From Mantamonas sphyraenae STR306 (lineage: Eukaryota; Protista; CRuMs), in contig JAPMXV010000072.1 of the NCBI GenBank assembly GCA_026936335.1, forward strand, positions 124,001 through 188,000: 64,000 nt of DNA, read 5' to 3'. Of this stretch, positions 50,326 to 64,000 are shown one piece after another. The translations under genes and the position numbers were made by a program. Each line of letters opens with the position of its first letter. Position 1 is the stretch's first letter. Under the pieces are notes generated by a model. It was not told where the DNA came from. It saw only the letters and a list, made by a program, of their open reading frames with translations, and searched no databases.

Positions 50326-51117
50326 CTACTCGGTTGAACTCGCCTGTTTGGATGCCAGCTGCATCTTAAAGTCCTGGATCTGGCTGCGCATGTTGTAGTT
50401 GGGGATGATGGTCTTGTTGTCCAGGGTCTGGTTGGTCATGGGCGATGTGTCGTGGGTTTTGAGCCAGTCCTCAATGGCCGTCCGTTCGTACGTGTACCCA
50501 TCGCACAGGAACACAGGGTCGCTGTAAACTGTAAAGGCAATGGGACACACAAACGCATCGGGTGCCTCTTGGCTCAGCTGCTCCTCCAGGTCCTCGTTTG
50601 CGTTGGCCAGCGACTCGATCTTGATGCGCGTCAACCCGCTCACTGTTGTCGTCTCTGTCTCTGTCTCTGTCTCTGCTGTCGTCTCCACCTCCACCCCCGT
50701 GGTAGACGTGGCATTCACCACACGCAGCTGCACCCCTTTGCCGTTGTGCATGTCCTGGAAGGAGACGTCGTCCAGGAAGAGGTAGTCCTTGAAGGAGACG
50801 TCAAAGAACTGCAGTTCCGCATCCAGAGGCACCCCCAGCTGGCAGTTCAGTTCCGACTTGAGTTGGCCAACCCCAGCCACACTCACCGTCAGCTCGTATG
50901 CCTTTTCCTGGAACTCCACCGTCAGCGTGAGATCCTTGACCCCCTGGTCCTGCCTGGTCCATTCCGCAGGCTGCTCCACCTTTTTCTGCTGTGGATCGTA
51001 GCTTCCGCCGTACGAATAGCCGCCGTAGCTGCCATAGCCACCGTAGCTGCTGTATGAGTTCTGATTGGTCGTCTGCTGCGGCTGGTAGTACGACCCATAC
51101 TGGCCGTAGCTTGAATA

Positions 51118-51153
<36 letters not shown>

Positions 51154-52698
51154 CCTGTACGACGACACATAGCTGTTGTATCGGTTGTACTGCTGCCGCT
51201 TCAACCCTGCTTTGCCGTACTGACGCATATCCTTGGGCGGCTTCTCATGGTACTCCACCTCGATCACCTTGCCCGCAAGCGCCACGTGCTCATTCAGAGC
51301 CACCACAAAGCGACCCATGCGTGAGCAGTCTGTGAAACGGTCCATGAATGCCGGCGTCTGTACGGTGAGGGTCACCTCGCCGGCCTGGCCTGTGACGATC
51401 TGCGTGGGGGAATCCTCCACGTTGTTGCCCAGCCTGTCTGTGGAAAAGTGCAACTTGTGAAAGTGCACACGTGCACTGATGCCGTGGGAGAGCATGGTGC
51501 CCTCGACACCAAACTGGACCCCCTTGGGTGCATTGATGACCATGATCTGTGCACGCAGTGTGTTGACCGCAGCATCCTCTGTGCGATGCACACTTGCAGT
51601 CATCACCATACCCCGTGCCACCTCCCTCAGCGCTGTGTTGCCCAAACACATGCCCACATTCATGCCTGCCACCGCCCGGCTCACCGACTCGTTCCACACC
51701 TCCATCGACTTGACCACCTTGCGCAACCCCAGCGGCGCAAGCATCACATTGCTTCCCACATCCAACGAGCCCTGCAGCACAACCCCAGTGACCACGGTGC
51801 CCACCCCACCGATCTTCATCTTGTCATGGATCACCATGCGGAACGGTGCGTCCACCTCACGTTCCATGGGTTCCAACGCCGCAAACAGTTCGCTCAGCGT
51901 GGCGCCTTCATACCATGACACCGCACCTGTGTTCTCCGTCAGGTTGTCATACGTGAATGCCATGCGAAACTCCTTTTCGTCCTTGCTCGGGCGTCGGCAC
52001 TGCAGCACCGTCCACGTCTGCCGATCCTTCTTCACACCCACTTTGGTGGCGTACTTGGTCAGCTCCGCCTTTACCTCTCCGTACAACTTGGCCTCGGCCT
52101 CGTCCTCATTGCCGCTGACCACGTACGCAAACACAAAGTCACGCACCCCGAGCGCAAGCGCCATCGAGAGTTGTGCTCGAAGACCCTGCCGGCGGTCGTG
52201 TCCCACATCCGCCTGGATGAACGCCTTGGAACACACAACCAATGCCACATCCGTCTATTCCAGGACGGGTGGTCATGGAAGCAATGCATGGGCAGTGTCG
52301 TGCAAGGGAACAGCCAAGGGCGTGTGTGTGTGTGTGAGTGGGAAGCACCCGGGTGTGTGTTAAGCCAGCAATTCCGCGAAATTGCCTTTGCTGCCAAAAC
52401 CAGGCCGGAATGGGCAATGCCAACTCACAATACCCATCATACGTGCGCGGTTGCGTCGAGAGTTGCCCGGCACGTGGAACCATGTGCCTTTCTTCCCGCC
52501 AAAATCCAGCGGAAACGAGAAGAGGTCGCCTTTGGGATTGGTAAGGTCTCGATCAGCGTAGAGACGTCGGAACTGGGAATTGTCGTTTACCAGCGCCCCC
52601 AGAACCATTGTGCTCAAGTCATGCTCCCCCAACACACACGCGAGTATGTTATTGTCGTCTGCTTGGACCTCTGTGTTTTTGCCCGATCGAGTCGACAT
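50326..52698 (-). CDS. eEF1A-derived pseudo-GTPase fused to a prion-like tract, possible ubiquitin-like domain and U-box (exons 52698-52429, 52254-50326; 732 aa)
   Basis: Domain II REVDAPFRMVIHDKMKIGGVGTVVTG..VKSMEV..AGMNVG; domain III AQIMVINAP..MGRFVV; U-box FVCPIAFTVYSDPVFLCDGYTYERTAIEDWL..TSPMT..PNYNMRSQI. Confidence 0.85.
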
Positions 52699-52713
52699 GA
52701 CGGATTTCGAGTT

Positions 52714-54097
52714 TCAGCTGTGTGCGTTGGCGTCGCTCAGATCCGCCGCCGTCGTCTCTCCATGCACGTCGATCACACGTCCCGTCATGGCCACGCGTGA
52801 GTCATACTGGAGCACCATGCCCATGGTTGGTGAGACACTTGTCAACGGCTGCAGTGGCAGCAACTCCAACTCCAGCTGTCCGTCGTCATCACCCTGCTTG
52901 CCTTTTTCCACCCGTGTCACGCGTTCCACTCGCGTCGCCACATGGATCCCTCGCACATACAGTTGCACCTCGTGGCCCTCTTGCACGCCATTCCGCGGCT
53001 GCCAATGGACGTGCACACGCACGTCCAGAGTGAGCACCGCATCGCGTTGCATCACCTCCTTTCGCGTCCCGTGTGTGCTGTCGGGCACACGCACCGCCAT
53101 TCCTGACTCAACACGAGTCAGACCGTAGACCGCAGCGCCCACGTATGCGCCCGCCTCGCCTGTGGACAGTGTGTCGTCAAACACGTGGAAGGAGTCCACG
53201 TACGCCTGCATGCCGTTCCATCCGATCAACACGGACTTGGAAGGTGTCATCCTTCCCTGCAGGATTTTGCCAGAGACCACAGCACCGACGCCAGAGACGT
53301 TCATGCGATGGTTGATCACCAGCAGGAACGGAGCATCCACGGCTCGCTCAGGCACAGGGACTGCGTCGATGCACTCGATCAGACACTGTCCCATGTCGAC
53401 CCCTCCCGTGTCTCCTTTGCTGGGGTGGACGTTGACAAAGGGCATGGGAATGTCCTCAAACGCCCCTTTCAGTTGTTGCTTGACAAACAAGGGGCCGTCC
53501 AGCTGGATGGTGGTCCACTGGATGTCCAGGACTTCACCACACAGCGTACCCATGCGCTCCATGTATCCTTGCACCCGTATACGTGCACTCTCGCTGTCTT
53601 CCAGGCTCTCCTTCTGGCCCAAGGAGTAGGCAAAGACGAACGACCGGATCCCCAACGCCACCGCACGGAGCACCTGTGCGTGCATGGGCGAAACTTGCCC
53701 ATTGTCAATCTCAAAGTCCTTCTCATTGCGCAGCATGCCCAGCACCACAATGGCAGCGTCACTCTGTGAGGGGGGAAGGGGGGGGAAGGGGGGGGGTCAG
53801 TGGAGAGGAGTGACACAAAACGCAAACACACCACCACGCACTCACCATGGCCAACATGCGACTTTGGTTTTTGACAGACACGCGCGACTGTGCACTGAGA
53901 TCAAACACAGTGACACGCCGTGTGCCTGTGTGCAATTGGAAGGCGTGGAGGTGGTGATGTGTCTCCATCGACGCCGCACTCTTGACACGCGCCCGCACGT
54001 CACCCAAAGCACAACACAACACCTCTGTCTTTCCCACCCCTGGCGAACCCAACATGCACAGAGTGAGGGCCTCGCTGCGATCCTCCGTGGATGACAT
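52714..54097 (-). CDS. Second eEF1A-derived degenerate GTPase (exons 54097-53846, 53763-52714; 433 aa)
   Basis: P-loop GSPGVGKT; VTVFD; DAAIVV; AVALGIRSFVF; LIECIDAVPVPERAVDAPF..VSGVGAVVSGKILQG; AGAYVG; no NKxD. Confidence 0.8.
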
Positions 54098-56712: not shown

Positions 56713-59001
56713 TCATTGCTTTGCCTTGACCACCCACACCATGATGGTGCCGTCTTGACAGCCTGCCACAAGGGTGACGGCGTCCTGTGTGGTGCATACG
56801 TCCAGACACTTGACCGGCGAGCCTGCGCCGGGAAGGACGGCAACCTCGGAGCCGCTGACCAGTTCCCACAGACGCACGTTGCCAGAGTTGCCGCCGGCCA
56901 CGAGATAGTTGCCGTCTGTGCACACGGCATGCATCACTTCCGATGGATACAGAGTCAGCAGCTCGCCTCCGTTGAATTCGCTGACCATGAGCATTTCGTC
57001 TGCGCTTGCGCTGACCACCTTGTCTCCCTCCGGGGACAGGGCAATGGCTGTGATTTCGTCTCTGTGTGCATGGACCAGTCCACGCATGGAATAGCCCGCC
57101 TGCACGTCCCACTCCACGTAGGTGCCGTCCTTGGATCCGCTGACTGCGTAGTTGCCCTGGGCATCCATCGCCAGGCAGTTCACCTCGGTTTCATGTTCCA
57201 CAAACTCCGCCACGGGCACCGACCCCAGCCCCTGACCCGGTGTGTACGTCCACTGACGCACCGAAGCGTCCCAGCTGCCCGACAGCAGCGTACTGTTGGC
57301 AAACGCCAGGCACGAGACAGCGTCCTCGTGCGCAGGCAGACTGTCACTCACGCGTCCGTAGTCCACCGAGTAGACGTGGATCTGGTCGTCCCAGGAGCCC
57401 ACCACTACGTCTTTTTCCGACGGCGTCAACACCACCGACGACAGGGTCATGTCGCACACATTGGTCGATCGCAATTGTCTCTCCTCGGTCAATGAGTACA
57501 GCTTCAACGACTGATCTTGCGACACAGAGTACACCACTGTGCCCTCCTTGCCCAGTTTCACCTCGGTTACCTCGTCCCTGTGCAACCGCGTGCACAACAC
57601 ACGCTCCCGCAACTCCTCACGCCCCAGCGACCCCCAATGGATGCCACCTCCCGACTCGCCATCCCCACCGTCGCCTACGCCGTCACCGGTCATGCCTGCG
57701 GTGTCATCCCCCTGTACAAAGCCTGCGTCGCTTCCCGACTGCAAATCAAACGCACCCATGCTGTCCAGACCACTGCTGCTGCCTCCGCTTGGAGACAGGA
57801 GGCCCATTTGCGCACTGCCACTCCCGCCGTGGATGGTACCGTGCTTGCCTGCCTGCTTGCGCTTGGGATGGGGCTTGCGAAACAGCTGCCTCGGTGTTTG
57901 GCCAAACTCGCTGATTTGCATCTCCATGCCCTTGCGTTCCATGGGATCTGTGATGCTGTCGATGTCCACCGCACCCTCGTACGTGAGGTAGTAGAACAGG
58001 TTGTCCGCTTTGACCGCCTCCACGCCGCGTTGCTTGTACCCAAACACGAGGTCGATCCACTGGTGCAGGTGCTTGCTCACATACTCGCACTCCAGCGCCT
58101 CGCGCATCTGACGCGTAAAGTCCGCGGCGTCCTTGGCCCACGGTGGCAACTTGACGTCGTCCACCTTTGTGCCGTCGCTACGCACGCCAAAGTCGATGCG
58201 GTTGCGATTGACCAGGAAATCGCCGGGGGGCACATAAAACTCGGGGATCAGCTCCTTCACGTCGCCTGTGTTGGTCAGCACGTTGTTGTACGTGTCTGCA
58301 ATGTCGTCAAACAGTCGGTCCGCCTGGTCAAACTTGCCGTTCTGCAAACGCAGCATGTACTGCGGCGCCACACGCACCAGATAAAACAGCACGTAGCCCG
58401 GCGTGGAGTAATGCGTGCCATACAGGAACCGTTTGCTGATAAACGTATCCCTGTCGTCCGCAGCGTCTCCCAATCCTCCGTTGCCGTCTCCGCCATCATC
58501 CGCACCGCCTCCAAGGTCACCGCCTCCAGTGGTGCCCAGGTCGGCGCTGCTGCCGCCTGCGGGTCCCATGTCGTCGTCGTCGGGCATCTGTTCGTAGCGC
58601 TCGCGAAAGACTTCCAGGCGCTCGGGATTGAGGGCGCCCACGGGTTTGCTGAGGTCGCGGAAGGAGTCTGGGTTGGTGAGGTCCAGGGTGTCTGAAGTGT
58701 AGTCCTGCAACACCCAGGGAAACACAGGGTACTGGGTGAGGTCGTTGTACGTGCGGCCGGCGAGGAAGTTGACCTGCTGCAAATAATCAAAGTTGGACAC
58801 CAGGCCGTTGACCCACTTCAGCGTGAGGGTGTCCAGATCGTCCAAGCGCACGTGGTTATGCGACGTCAAGTCCACCAGCAGTTCATACATGCTTTCCCGC
58901 GCCTGGTGGTCCTTGAAGGAAAAGAACACCGAATCCGTGGCACTTGCACGCTTGGATAGATCTCCTGTGCCACCGGTGCTTCCATTGCCACTGCTGCTGC
59001 C

Positions 59002-59034
<33 letters not shown>

Positions 59035-60252
59035 TCTGCTGCTTCCACCTGTGCCTGTGCCAACGTCGTTGGAGAGGAAAAACACCTCGAGACCCACGTG
59101 ACGCAGCATATGACGGCGCAGGGAGACATTGATGATGCTGTCGAGAGGGTACTTGAAGACAGGAGTGGCGGAAATGTTGTTGCTGGGTTGGAAGTAGAGG
59201 ACAGAGTTGGTGAGGAGCATGCGGCCCGGTTCGTTGCACAACGGCGTCACACGCGTCACCATGCACTGCTTCAACTGCTTCTCCGTCGTCATCTCCAGCC
59301 AGCTCTTGTCAAACGGAATCGATTCGTTGCGTTCCTGCATCCAAGCCTGACAGAGAGAGAGTGTGTGTGTGTGAGTGTGTACGTGTGCAGTGGGAGGGTG
59401 TGGGGGGGGAAGGGTTTGGGGTGGGAGGGCAGCAAGTTGATCACGTGCCGTCCCCAGGGTGCACACATGCACTCGTGATGCAAGTGGAGTGGGTGATGCG
59501 TGGCATGGACCCAGTGTGAGGGTGTGGCGTGGTGGAACGCTTACCTCGAGTTCCTCCTCGCCCTCGCCGGCGGGCTTGCTGGCCATCTGGAAAAGTTCCT
59601 GAAAGACCGGGAGCAGGGCGCCTGCGTTGACGTAGTTGAGGGAGAAGCGATGGTGTGCCTGCTGGGTGTGAAAGGCATAGGGGGCGTTCTCGTTGAAGGC
59701 CAGCATGGAGATGTGCTGTGTGCAGAGGAGCTCCACCAGGTCGCCGTTTACGGCGGCAAAGGGGCCGGTGAGCGACGACGTGTACGAGTCCAGGTACACA
59801 GTGTTCTTGAAGGGAAACTTGAGTACAGGGTTGTCCAGACCCGCAGGCTCAAACACCAGCGAGTGGGAACACAGCTTGAGGCGTCCCTTTTGCTTCCTGC
59901 ATGCGTGGGAGCGCGGGTCAGCAAGGTGCGAAGGAGGGCACATTCGCATCGCGCGCGAGGGATCCACTCGGGGGGCAAACGAGGAGGGACATCACCTCCA
60001 GACTTACTTGGCGACGGACTCTTGCTCAGACCGGGCCGGTGGGTAGTAGTAGACGCTAAAGTCGTCGATGTAGTACTCGCCCTCGTCCAACAGGAGCAGG
60101 GAAAAGCGAGTTTTCGAGGGGCGAACAAACTGATGGGGGGAGTGGGAGTGGGGAGGGGAAAGGGTTAATGGGATGGAGGAGGGTGGTGAGGTGGGGTGGA
60201 GGGTAGGTGGGTGGGTGGTGGTGGTAGGGGTGGATGGAGGGTGGTGTACCAT
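56713..60252 (-). CDS. NSMAF: FAN/NSMAF-like GRAM-PH-BEACH-WD40 protein (exons 60252-60250, 60129-60008, 59896-59545, 59346-56713)
   Basis: RFSLLLLDEGEYY, GRLKLCSHSLVFEP, SNFDYL..AGRTYNDLTQYPVFPWV, YGTHYSTPGYV, DVKELIPEFY, WIDLVFGYKQRG, FGQTPRQLF and C-terminal WD40 repeats. Confidence 0.94.
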
Positions 60253-60573
60253 TTGGGAAGATCGTGGGTGAGCCAGCGCATGGTGGGGAGGATGGGGGTT
60301 GGAGGGAGGATGGACAGAGTGTGGGGTGTGTGGTTGGGTGGGATGTGTCGCTGCAGGGAAGTGGTGGATACGAGGATCTGGACGATGTGATGGAGAGCGA
60401 GGGTGAAAGGTTGTTTGCATCGCAGATGTTGGGCTTCGGCGTGTGCTGGGAGGAAGGAGTGCATGGGAAACATGTGGTTGCATGCGACAGGAGTGGTGAC
60501 GGTGGTTGGAGATGGATCTGGGAGGAGGATGGGGTGTTGTTTGGGAGGGAGGTGCGCGGCTGGGGACACTTCA

Positions 60574-63500
60574 ATGGACAAGAGACAACGTGATGAAGGG
60601 GGAGAGACGGAGGTTGGAATTGAGGTGATGAAGAGACAACGGATAGAGGAGGGGGGACGTAGGGCAATGCAGACGCGGTTTGTGGAAGTGGAGATGTCAA
60701 GAGGGAACGGCGACAGGGACGGAGAGGCTGGGGAAGAGGGGGAGGGTGCTATGGATGTGGATGGAGTGGGGAGGGTGGAAGGGGCGCACACGGGTGAGTC
60801 ATCGTCGTCGTCTGGAGTGAGGGATGGGCAGGGAAAGGATGGGAACACGAAAAGAAGGGGGAAGTTTGGTGGTCACTGGTGGGAGGAGGGCGGAATGAGG
60901 GATGTGAGGGTACTGGTGCTGGGGAATGATGGGAATGGGACACTTGGATCTGTGGATGAGCAGCGGGTGATTGAAGGGGCGTGTCATGAGACGCCATTGG
61001 AGCCATTGGGGAGGCTGGACACGCGTCAGGACGCTGTGGTGCGGCTGGCGCGTGAGTACGGGCAGCACATGGTGCATATTGTGGCACACATGGGAAGAGA
61101 GTACGTGGAGGCTGAGGATGGGGATGTGATGCGGCAGACACTTGTGGATGCAGTGAGGGAGGCAAGGCCTGTGCTGGTGTTTCTGAACGGGTGTGAGAGC
61201 GAGGAGATAGCAAAGAAGGTGGGTGAGTATGTGCCAGTGGTGATTGGATACAGGGAGAAGGTGCTCGACGGGCCAGCTGTGAAGATGGCAGGGGCACTGT
61301 ATGAGGCATTGGGAGCGGGAGAGGGAGTAGCGACGGCGTTTGGGGAAGCACAGAAGGCAGGAGGGGACAGAGAGGGGAAGAAGGCAGTGTTGGTGACATG
61401 GGAGGGGTGGGAGAAGGAGAGGCTGGTGAATGGGAGAGGGAGGAGTGCAAAGGAGGCAGAGGCAGGATGGGCAAAGCGGGTGGACAATCTGAGCAAGAAG
61501 AGGGAGCTGGTGGCGAGGAATGGTGTCATGGAGAAGGTGTGGGGAGAAGAAGGGGTGGTGGTGATGCATGGGGCACGGGGCATGGGCAAGACAAGTGTGG
61601 CACAGATGTATGCGTGGAGGTTGAAAGAGGAAAGGGCGGCGGAGGTGGTGTGGTGGGTGCGTGGGCAGAGCAGGGAGGAGGTGGTGAGTGATGTGCTGCA
61701 ACTGGGAGTGGCATTGGGGGTGTTGAAGAACCAGGAGGTGGAGATGGCGAACAAGGAGGAGGTGCGGGAAGGGATGGCACGGCAGACGATACGCGCGCTG
61801 AAGGGACGACGGTGGGTGATGGTTGTGGATGGAGTGGAGGAGTGGGGTGATGTGAAACCTGTGCTGCAGGAGGGAGGGACGGTGGTGGTGACAACGTGGA
61901 GGGATGGGATTTGGGACACGAGGGCGGTGGACAAAGTGGTGCGAGTGGGGATCATGGAGGATGGGGAAGTGGATGCAGTGTTTGAAAGTGAAGGGGTGGT
62001 GATGAGTGGAATGGATGAGGAGGAGGAGTTGAAGGCGTATGGGGAGCTGAAGGAGCTTCTGGGAGGGATGGCGCTGGCAGTGCGACAAGCAGCGGCTGTG
62101 ATTGGGAAGGGTAGAGGAAGAGGACGGGTGGGCAAGTACAGGAAGAGACTGGGGAGGAACTTGGGGCAGCTGGAGAAAGGGATTGATTCAGATGCTTATG
62201 ACAAGACGACGATGGCAGTGTGGAAGTTGGCGATGGAGGCAGCTGGGGAGAAGAACGAGGATGCAGAGGGACTGATGCAGTGTCTGGCACTTTTGGATGG
62301 GAGTGGAGTGCAAAGGAGAGTGGTGGTGACGCTGATGGAGAATGTGGAGGGCGTGGGGGACAGGGACGAGGCAGAGGAGCGGGCAGAGGATGCGATGGAA
62401 TCGTTGGAGCGTGTGTCGCTGGTGCAACGGGCTGTGGATGGGGATGGTTGGCAGGTGCATGGACTGGTGCAGTTGATGACGCGGGGAGGGGAGGAGCTAC
62501 AGGTGGAGGCAGACGGGGGTATGGAGGCATGCCAGCGTGTGTTGAAGATGATGGGGAAGGAGTTTGCCTTTGACCCAAGTAGGTCACTGGAAGAGCTTGT
62601 GTGGCACAGGGAGATGCTGATGCATGGGGAGCGGGTGTGGAGGGTGTGTCAAGCAGCGTGCCAAGCTTCAGGTGAAGTTAACAACGTGCGTTGGGTTGGG
62701 CAGAATGTGGCAGCGGTGCATGATTGGATGGGAGCATACGGGAAGGCGGAGAGGGTGCTGGAGGAGGTGATTGAGGTGCAGAGGAGGGCAGGGATGGATG
62801 GGGAGGAGAATACGGGATGGGCAAGGAGCATCCACAACATGGCTGGGGTGTACGAAGCCAAGGGAGAGTACGATCGGGCACTGGAGCTGCATGAGCAGGC
62901 ACTGGAGATCATACGACGGGTGCATGGTGGGGATGCGCACCCGTCTGTGGCCACGAGCATCCACAACATGGCTGGGGTGTACCAGGCCAAGGGAGAGTAC
63001 GATCGGGCACTGGAGCTGTATGAGCAGGCACTGGAGATCATACGACGGGTGCATGGTGGGGATGAGCACCCATCTGTGGCCACGAGCATCCACAACATGG
63101 CTGAGGTGTACCAGGCCAAGGGAGAGTACGATCGGGCACTGGAGCTGTATGAGCAGGCACTGGCGATCGAGCGACGGGTGCATGGTGGGGATGAGCACCC
63201 ATCTGTGGCCACGAGCATCCACAACATAGCTAGTGTGTACGATGACAAGGGAGAGTACGATCGGGCACTGGAGCTGTATAAGCAGGCACTGGAGATCGAT
63301 CGACGGGTGCATGGTGGGGATGCGCACCCGTCTGTGGCCACGAGCATCCACAACATAGCTAGTGTGTACGATGACAAGGGAGAGTACGATCGGGCACTGG
63401 AGCTGTATAAGCAGGCACTGGAGATCAAGCGACGGGTGCATGGTGGGGATGCGCACCCGGAAGTCGCAGCGAGCATTCACAACATGGCTGTGGTGTACCA

Positions 63501-64000
63501 GGCCAAGGGAGAGTACGATCGGGCACTGGAGCTGCATGAGCAGGCACTGGAGATCGATCGACGTGTGCATGGTGGGGATGAGCACCCGTCTGTGGCCACG
63601 AGCATCCACAACATGGCTGGGGTGTACAAAGCCAAGGGAGAGTACGATCGGGCACTGGAGCTGTATGAGCAGGCACTGAAGATCGATCGACGTGTGCATG
63701 GTGGGGATGAGCACCCGTCAGTGGCCACGAGCATCCACAACATGGCTGAGGTGTACCAGGCCAAGGGAGAGTACGATCGGGCACTGGAGCTGTATGAGCA
63801 GGCACTGGAGATCGAGCGACGGGTGCATGGTGGGGATGAGCACCCGTCAGTGGCCACGAGCATCCACAACATAGCTAGTGTGTACGATGACAAGGGAGAG
63901 TACGATCGGGCACTGGAGCTGCATGAGCAGGCACTGGAGATCAAGCGACGTGTGCATGGTGGGGATGAGCACCCGTCAGTGGCCACGAGCATCCACAACA
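60574..64000 (+). CDS. NLR-like STAND protein: CHAT (caspase-fold) protease + NB-ARC NTPase + tandem TPRs; truncated by the window end
   Basis: Frame +1 is open from 60391 to 64000 (first ATG 60463, likely start 60574). VHIVAHMG and LVFLNGCES; Walker A GARGMGKT; Walker B WVMVVDGVE; VVVTTWR; LGGMALAVRQAAA; WQVHGLVQ; 43-aa TPRs. Confidence 0.9.
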   Translation, partial: MDKRQRDEGGETEVGIEVMKRQRIEEGGRRAMQTRFVEVEMSRGNGDRDGEAGEEGEGAMDVDGVGRVEGAHTGESSSSSGVRDGQGKDGNTKRRGKFGGHWWEEGGMRDVRVLVLGNDGNGTLGSVDEQRVIEGACHETPLEPLGRLDTRQDAVVRLAREYGQHMVHIVAHMGREYVEAEDGDVMRQTLVDAVREARPVLVFLNGCESEEIAKKVGEYVPVVIGYREKVLDGPAVKMAGALYEALGAGEGVATAFGEAQKAGGDREGKKAVLVTWEGWEKERLVNGRGRSAKEAEAGWAKRVDNLSKKRELVARNGVMEKVWGEEGVVVMHGARGMGKTSVAQMYAWRLKEERAAEVVWWVRGQSREEVVSDVLQLGVALGVLKNQEVEMANKEEVREGMARQTIRALKGRRWVMVVDGVEEWGDVKPVLQEGGTVVVTTWRDGIWDTRAVDKVVRVGIMEDGEVDAVFESEGVVMSGMDEEEELKAYGELKELLGGMALAVRQAAAVIGKGRGRGRVGKYRKRLGRNLGQLEKGIDSDAYDKTTMAVWKLAMEAAGEKNEDAEGLMQCLALLDGSGVQRRVVVTLMENVEGVGDRDEAEERAEDAMESLERVSLVQRAVDGDGWQVHGLVQLMTRGGEELQVEADGGMEACQRVLKMMGKEFAFDPSRSLEELVWHREMLMHGERVWRVCQAACQASGEVNNVRWVGQNVAAVHDWMGAYGKAERVLEEVIEVQRRAGMDGEENTGWARSIHNMAGVYEAKGEYDRALELHEQALEIIRRVHGGDAHPSVATSIHNMAGVYQAKGEYDRALELYEQALEIIRRVHGGDEHPSVATSIHNMAEVYQAKGEYDRALELYEQALAIERRVHGGDEHPSVATSIHNIASVYDDKGEYDRALELYKQALEIDRRVHGGDAHPSVATSIHNIASVYDDKGEYDRALELYKQALEIKRRVHGGDAHPEVAASIHNMAVVYQAKGEYDRALELHEQALEIDRRVHGGDEHPSVATSIHNMAGVYKAKGEYDRALELYEQALKIDRRVHGGDEHPSVATSIHNMAEVYQAKGEYDRALELYEQALEIERRVHGGDEHPSVATSIHNIASVYDDKGEYDRALELHEQALEIKRRVHGGDEHPSVATSIHN
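62827..64000 (+). repeat. 129-bp (43-aa) TPR tandem array, at least 9 full units, continuing beyond the window
   Basis: Units start at 62827, 62956, 63085, 63214, 63343, 63472, 63601, 63730, 63859, 63988; consensus SIHNxAxVYxxKGEYDRALELxxQALxIxRRVHGGDxHPSVAT. Confidence 0.96.

Follow-up and report, generated by a model that had tools for sequence, protein, structure and literature searches.

Death pathways that link NLRs, proteases and gasdermins have been described in animals, filamentous fungi and bacteria, and expansions of NLR genes are often tied to multicellularity. This article describes a gene of Mantamonas sphyraenae STR306, a unicellular flagellate of the CRuMs, a lineage near the base of Amorphea, in which a CHAT (caspase-HetF) domain, an NB-ARC module and an array of tetratricopeptide repeats (TPRs) are joined in the manner of an NLR-type receptor. 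The gene begins within a stretch of 64,000 nucleotides (hereafter the window; positions 124,001 to 188,000 of contig JAPMXV010000072.1, assembly GCA_026936335.1), to which coordinates refer unless a contig is named; contigs carry short labels, this one being C72. The host is bacterivorous, most of its genes have a single exon, its cultures are non-axenic and its genome comprises 25.06 Mb in 78 contigs with 59.19% GC (PMC10492846).

The CHAT-NB-ARC-repeat architecture is not new, as CHAT-NLRs are known from bacteria and fungi. In multicellular bacteria, CHAT serves as an N-terminal effector of NLRs (bioRxiv 2020.01.06.895854), and reviews count it among the effectors of fungal and bacterial NLRs. 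In bacterial CHAT-STAND-repeat proteins (P0071 and the CHAT-NACHT-HEAT proteins P0030, P0066 and P0088), the same short CHAT subtype stands N-terminal to a STAND NTPase and repeats; P0071, a metagenomic CHAT-NB-ARC-WD40 protein from a bacterial context, aligns collinearly with the Mantamonas protein over CHAT and NB-ARC (probability 99%, E 3.8e-18). Unlike these proteins, to which it is ~25% identical, the Mantamonas gene is eukaryotic and nuclear, carries a His-Met active-site motif with a shorter His-Cys loop, and ends in an array of near-identical 43-amino-acid (aa) TPRs under diversification.

Other described systems resemble the Mantamonas gene in part. Fungal NLRs likewise combine effector, NB-ARC and TPRs; their repeats vary in number, are highly identical to one another and have a few hypervariable sites (PMC4986451). 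That study found NLRs in filamentous fungi only, not yeasts, whereas Mantamonas is a unicellular flagellate outside the opisthokonts. In Podospora, a CHAT domain processes a gasdermin (PMC8851545), and the experimentally shown fungal case is a TPR-CHAT protein without NB-ARC, unlike the Mantamonas gene. SAVED-CHAT of Haliangium ochraceum (PDB 8TL0), the closest solved structure to the Mantamonas CHAT domain with its dyad in register, is activated by oligomerisation and cleaves a second caspase-like protease, PCaspase (bioRxiv 2023.06.23.546230); unlike the Mantamonas protein, it senses through SAVED/cA3 as part of a CRISPR pathway and not through NB-ARC-TPR, and its active site has a canonical GHG and a His-Cys spacing of 47. 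In Runella, a Roc-COR-CHAT protein cleaves a bacterial gasdermin (bioRxiv 2021.06.07.447441). Ectocarpus, a non-animal, non-plant eukaryote, has NB-ARC-TPRs of similar repeat pattern, and likewise a paired expansion of NB-ARC-TPR and LRR-ROCO genes, candidate immune receptors with positively selected repeats (PMC3341825); caspases are never mentioned there and repeats are shuffled as exons, whereas the Mantamonas TPRs lie in one frame and both of its families carry CHAT. A search that left most subscription journals outside found no literature linking Mantamonas to NLRs or gasdermins. What is new here is the lineage, the active-site variant and a possible pathway.

A Tripartite NLR-like Protein

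The gene is real and intact. The original prediction had read an uninterrupted plus-strand frame of more than 1100 codons starting at 60574, which indeed continues undisrupted past the window to a stop codon at C72:188935, 935 bases beyond its end, and encodes a product of 1453 aa. Inspection of the downstream sequence also showed that the regular TPR array is completed there and closed by a capping helix. In the non-repeat part of the frame, 751 codons run without a stop; the longest such run in 500 shuffles was 223.

A single frame thus holds the tripartite layout of effector, nucleotide-binding oligomerisation domain and superstructure-forming repeats, here CHAT, NB-ARC and 17 TPR-like units. 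The three domain calls, and the NLR-like reading built on them, are backed by profile, structure and selection evidence. The NB-ARC module matches its Pfam profile at 33.6 bits, over the cut-off of 23.5, and the motifs that had been proposed for it were all located: Walker A (GARGMGKT, 61570-61593), Walker B (WVMVVDG, 61813-61833), a GLPL-like motif that reads GMAL (62065-62076) and a winged-helix VHG at the MHD position (62455-62463), to which sensor-1 (VVVTTWR, 61882-61902) can be added. Walker A is invariant in all paralogs, and Walker B, GMAL and VH(G/E) are conserved among the 12 paralogs compared. The multi-domain structural model has a predicted local distance difference test score (pLDDT) of 71, and its Foldseek matches include the archaeal STAND-TPR protein 6MFV, Apaf-1, RPP1 and CED-4. 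Among paralogs, the ratio of non-synonymous to synonymous substitution rates (dN/dS) is 0.35-0.45 in NB-ARC and 0.41-0.53 in CHAT; both domains are under purifying selection. The protein is very probably an NLR-type sensor.

Fold of the CHAT Domain

The N-terminal region models as a caspase fold, as had been proposed, whereas its score against Pfam CHAT (PF12770), 17.7 bits, lies below the curated cut-off of 24. The same profile matches 14 of the 15 family members at E values up to 0.1, and some paralogs pass the cut-off. A family profile built from 15 Mantamonas CHAT copies matches SAVED-CHAT (8TL0) at E 1.1e-15, with the His and Cys codons placed by the original prediction at 61087 and 61192 in register with H375 and C422. 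With a limit of E 0.001, this profile retrieves 12,605 proteins, and most of the top matches that were scanned are Pfam CHAT; ESM Atlas likewise assigns CHAT to the domain (score 0.96). The AlphaFold2 (AF2) model of the domain (pLDDT 87), in which the His comes after strand 60-64 and the Cys after strand 95-99, is closest to 8TL0 (Foldseek template-modelling score, TM, 0.79; Z 20) and to CHAT clusters of the Atlas (TM 0.83-0.90); separase follows at Z 13.4 and caspases at Z ~12, separases, metacaspases, MALT1 and caspases together spanning Z 12-13. As far as modelling goes, the caspase-hemoglobinase fold is settled. A pairing of the catalytic His taken from a single-sequence alignment to the PDB fell on the wrong residue and was replaced by the profile alignment with 8TL0.

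An Atypical His-Met Active Site

The original prediction had cited HxxGHG plus LxxC as the known dyad of the CHAT/caspase fold. Both dyad residues are present, but the histidine motif reads HIVAHMG, with Ala for the Gly before the catalytic His and Met for the Gly after it, where relatives read HFSGHG. Gly precedes the catalytic His in 165 of 179 related domains.

Several observations weigh against the reading of the protein as a functional sensor-protease. In the same 179 domains the catalytic His is followed by Gly in 155 and by Met in none. The His-Cys spacing of 35 aa is shorter than in nearly all relatives (mostly 39-44), and the loop after the His (residues 69-74) is poorly predicted, with pLDDT <50. 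Sensor-1, canonically TTR, is TTW(R/K) in all paralogs, its basic residue shifted by one and replaced by Lys in several copies. About 5 of the 13 close paralogs look frameshifted, although indels in the repeats could stem from the assembly. Within the caspase clan, His-Gly is almost a signature, and its Gly contributes to the oxyanion hole in caspases.

The His-Met form does not, from the sequences compared, look like the decay of a single copy. His-Met and Cys are present in all 13 close paralogs as well as in a divergent CHAT-NB-ARC gene (C68:247k) and a Roco-CHAT gene (C68:142k), whose CHAT domains are 24-27% identical to this one. Across four Mantamonas CHAT lineages (24-46% identical), 19 of 168 columns are invariant, among them both motif His, the Met after the His, the Asn two before the Cys and the Cys itself, a rough argument since structural constraint preserves such sites as well. 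Other Roco-CHATs of the same genome keep His-Gly. Pattern scans of metagenomes returned canonical GHG-type CHATs only, and those of viral and bacterial genomes gave none. Because His-Met and Cys are kept across Mantamonas CHATs that are only ~25% identical, protease activity is plausible, and we lean toward an active CHAT domain.

The same site could instead belong to a pseudo-protease, a dead or weak CHAT that, in the way of c-FLIP or a CARD, would serve on oligomerisation as an adaptor or a trap for substrates and recruit an active partner, possibly one of the His-Gly Roco-CHATs or a caspase-like enzyme. The loss of both GHG glycines, the coexistence of His-Gly CHATs in the genome and a CHAT dN/dS (0.4-0.5) that is not below that of NB-ARC and exceeds that of the arm region all fit this alternative. 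However, pseudo-enzymes usually lose the Cys or the His itself, and these lineages retain both; the Met is fixed rather than variable; and Met, too, can supply the backbone amide on which the oxyanion hole relies. We regard a pseudo-protease as unlikely. Because the fold, the two dyad residues, NB-ARC and the tripartite layout were found and His-Gly was not, the protein is filed as an NLR-like STAND protein with an atypical CHAT domain, not as a proven protease.

TPR Array and Diversification

The TPRs predicted for the 3′ part of the frame form a regular 129-nucleotide array that reaches the window end (9.1 copies, 92% matches). In the whole gene, one irregular unit is followed by 16 regular 43-aa anchors; all 15 full units differ, yet they are 92% identical at the nucleotide level. 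Among 132 units of the family, variation is concentrated at unit positions 7, 10 and 29, each with up to 12 residues. Although they were picked from this gene only, the same positions rank as the top three for variability in three other genes (C68:146k, C68:317k and C77). The proportion of non-synonymous differences (pN) at the three sites is 2.8-6.3 times the array-wide proportion of synonymous differences (pS), against 0.17-0.29 at constant sites, figures obtained by simple counting on arrays that share ancestry, probably exchange units and hence are not independent tests. The variable sites of helix A are grouped on one face near a conserved Asn (p 0.03), the usual peptide-binding groove of TPRs. 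The number of TPRs among paralogs ranges from ~5 to 57; the longest array belongs to a paralog on C51 (~133-143.5 kb, minus strand), a 3478-aa open frame with ~57 units. The array agrees with the hallmarks of high-conservation repeats in fungal NLRs, namely repeat identity above 85%, variable repeat number and diversifying sites on the concave face, and the TPRs of those NLRs evolve under the same regime (PMC4986451).

Such a pattern bears on the possibility that the family is silent or decaying, a set of repeat genes that duplication and gene conversion have multiplied and that has no current function. Frame breaks in several paralogs and the extreme composition of fourfold sites (G 63%, C 3%) agree with decay. 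This copy, however, has an unbroken frame of 1453 codons, CHAT and NB-ARC have dN/dS values well under 1, and the TPRs change non-synonymously at a few sites only, the same ones from gene to gene; birth-and-death is, moreover, normal for NLR families. Decay is thus an improbable explanation.

Paralogs and Other CHAT Genes

A genome-wide search, which the original prediction had called for, showed the gene to be one of 13 close paralogs that fall into two subgroups on 8 contigs. The genome holds 31 CHAT-like and ~20 NB-ARC matches in total. In the paralog at C67:113 kb, CHAT and NB-ARC are separated by an extra 45 aa, which include a hydrophobic stretch resembling a transmembrane helix; both tandem C67 copies lie head-to-head with an ankyrin-repeat gene. 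At C68:200-235 kb, four LRR-Roc-CHAT genes stand in tandem; they have His-Gly, share the CHAT subtype of the NLRs and are followed by ankyrin-repeat genes. More CHAT and CHAT plus NB-ARC loci are known by position only (C5:276-281 kb, C13:240 kb, C73:155 kb, C49:453-468 kb and C51:535 kb), several of which score higher on Pfam CHAT.

Outside Mantamonas, the nearest relatives of the gene are bacterial, at <30% identity. A word-based homolog search with the CHAT region gave no match, and one with CHAT plus NB-ARC only four distant NB-ARC-TPR proteins (26-28% identity); no exact copy of any start variant was present in a 15-billion collection. In a CHAT tree, the NLR and Roco CHATs of Mantamonas group together on long, compositionally biased branches; because the matches were drawn with Mantamonas' own profile, no conclusion on a donor or on transfer is taken from it.

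A Candidate Output on Contig C68

As originally noted, the window has no recognisable substrate gene. A candidate lies instead between close paralogs on C68, where the order at 138-162 kb is His-Met Roco-CHAT, CHAT-NLR, caspase-like gene, gasdermin-like exon, STAND-like gene and another CHAT-NLR. The Roco-like CHAT gene bears LRRs (139.7-143.1 kb, plus strand) and is tail-to-tail with the CHAT-NLR. The caspase-like (minus strand) and gasdermin-like (plus strand) genes are spliced and head-to-head at 148.6-153.1 kb, the gasdermin-like gene ~3 kb from paralog C68:146k; in the caspase-like gene, as read by eye, the His and Cys motifs are in separate exons. A second copy of the pair is known by position at 163.8-166.9 kb. 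The arrangement recalls Roc-COR-CHAT with its gasdermin in Runella, the fungal CHAT/gasdermin clusters and the cascade from SAVED-CHAT to PCaspase. The likeness to Runella lies in the CHAT subtype shared by the Mantamonas LRR-Roc-CHATs, one of which, with His-Met, stands a few kb from the gasdermin-like gene; it concerns relatives of the gene described here, not its locus, and the gasdermin assignment is weak.

By analogy, the caspase-like/gasdermin-like pair is a candidate output of the CHAT-NLRs. Against a gasdermin link speak the nature of the call, a single language-model score (ESM Atlas bGSDM 0.93, 185/256 features, low recognition 1669), and exon-by-exon searches, in which the gasdermin-like gene had no Pfam, NCBIfam, PADLOC, PDB or word-search match. 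This locus, moreover, has no candidate substrate and no adjoining gasdermin gene, unlike the fungal clusters in which CHAT effectors are tied to gasdermins (PMC8851545; PMC9815663; PMC12881547). Exon-by-exon searches by hidden Markov model or sequence gave no confirmation of the caspase-like gene, and the gasdermin Pfam PF04598 has no match in the genome. A gasdermin-linked output is a tentative proposal, somewhat less likely than not, and its combination with an active His-Met protease is slightly more doubtful.

The output might also be other than cell death, with a signalling or regulatory protein cleaved in prey discrimination, self/non-self or mating recognition, or a stress response. In bacteria, CHATs act on an anti-sigma factor or on another protease, the target of SAVED-CHAT is another protease and not a pore-former, most paralogs, this gene included, lack an effector neighbour, and a unicellular bacterivore (PMC10492846) profits less from suicide than a mycelium. 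Two caspase-like/gasdermin-like pairs beside close paralogs on C68 point the other way, and a non-lethal protease seems rather improbable.

Proposed Mechanism

The best explanation, to which we give about an even chance, is an NLR-type sensor-protease, one of an expanded and diversifying family, that cuts a substrate encoded elsewhere. From what is observed (an intact gene with its folds and motifs, a family in which CHAT and NB-ARC are under purifying selection and TPR sites diversify, and the genomic surroundings), we infer the following steps. The concave groove of the TPR solenoid would bind ligands that vary, the likeliest being proteins or peptides of ingested or invading bacteria, viruses or parasites. 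By what is known of STAND proteins, binding would relieve autoinhibition of NB-ARC, with exchange of ADP for ATP and oligomerisation. On the model of SAVED-CHAT filaments and Apaf-1/CED-4, clustering may then join the N-terminal CHAT domains and order the His/Cys site. The His-Met protease would in turn cut its substrate, for which the best candidate is the C68 caspase-like/gasdermin-like pair between two close paralogs and beside the Roco-CHAT gene, and the outcome could be lytic cell death.

The Locus

The features of the gene are given in Table 1. The predicted start, ATG 60574, aligns with the start Met of paralog C68:317k, while a conserved Met at 60895, the beginning of the CHAT domain, may be an alternative start. 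In all 13 paralogs the leader frame continues without a stop ahead of the CHAT Met, with a dN/dS of 0.7-1.0; the leader is probably disordered and barely constrained. A GTGAGT donor-like site lies within the leader-coding region (60795-60800), where a short intron may exist. The strand bias at fourfold sites extends over 60895-62700, is stronger than in adjoining genes and is common to the His-Met Roco gene (G 81%).

Table 1. Features of the Mantamonas CHAT-NB-ARC-TPR gene and its upstream region.
Feature	Coordinates	Strand	Basis
CHAT-NB-ARC-TPR open frame	60574..64000, continuing to window-equivalent 64935	+	sequence read, 1453 aa
Low-complexity E/G/R-rich leader, 107 aa	60574..60894	+	open frame, dN/dS
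Minimal CHAT (caspase-HetF) domain, caspase-hemoglobinase fold (predicted)	60895..61404	+	profile, model, Foldseek
Catalytic-His strand VHIVAHMG, His codon 61087	61072..61095	+	alignment to relatives
Catalytic-Cys strand LVFLNGCES, Cys codon 61192	61174..61200	+	in register with SAVED-CHAT C422
NB-ARC / STAND module	61483..62480	+	Pfam, Foldseek, paralog motif conservation
Helical arm and one irregular first TPR	62481..62826	+	AF2 secondary structure
Array of 43-aa TPR units	62827..64000	+	9.1 units in window, 16 anchors in whole gene
Divergent intergenic region, ~290 bp, common to the NLR gene and the BEACH-WD40 gene	60283..60573	.	sequence; BEACH start codon inferred

Upstream and head-to-head with the NLR gene lies a FAN/NSMAF-like PH-BEACH-WD40 gene with apparent introns (56713-60282, minus strand; Pfam BEACH, PH_FAN and WD40); downstream are ordinary eukaryotic genes, with a kinesin further on. 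Because of these surroundings, the NLR gene is taken to be native nuclear DNA. Bacterial contamination or a mis-assembled bacterial insert, suggested by the bacterial nature of the nearest CHAT and NB-ARC relatives and by the non-axenic cultures, is effectively refuted: the gene stands between eukaryotic genes with apparent introns, has host-like GC and exists in 13 copies on 8 contigs, while the best outside identity is <30% and searches of bacterial genomes, metagenomes and viruses gave no close match. Elsewhere in the window, two tandem eEF1A-like genes occupy 50326-52248 and 52360-54097 (both minus strand), one of them with a fused C-terminal U-box-like domain.

Significance

The conserved His-Met form would either be a working exception that teaches something about how these enzymes catalyse and choose substrates, or represent a new class of pseudo-caspase adaptor. 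If the reading proposed here is true, diversifying CHAT-NLRs in a CRuMs flagellate would demonstrate that solitary protists, too, engage in receptor arms races and perhaps undergo pyroptosis-like death. The family offers defined, culturable parts for the study of protist innate immunity, and it suggests that free-living protists may have inflammasome-like defence.

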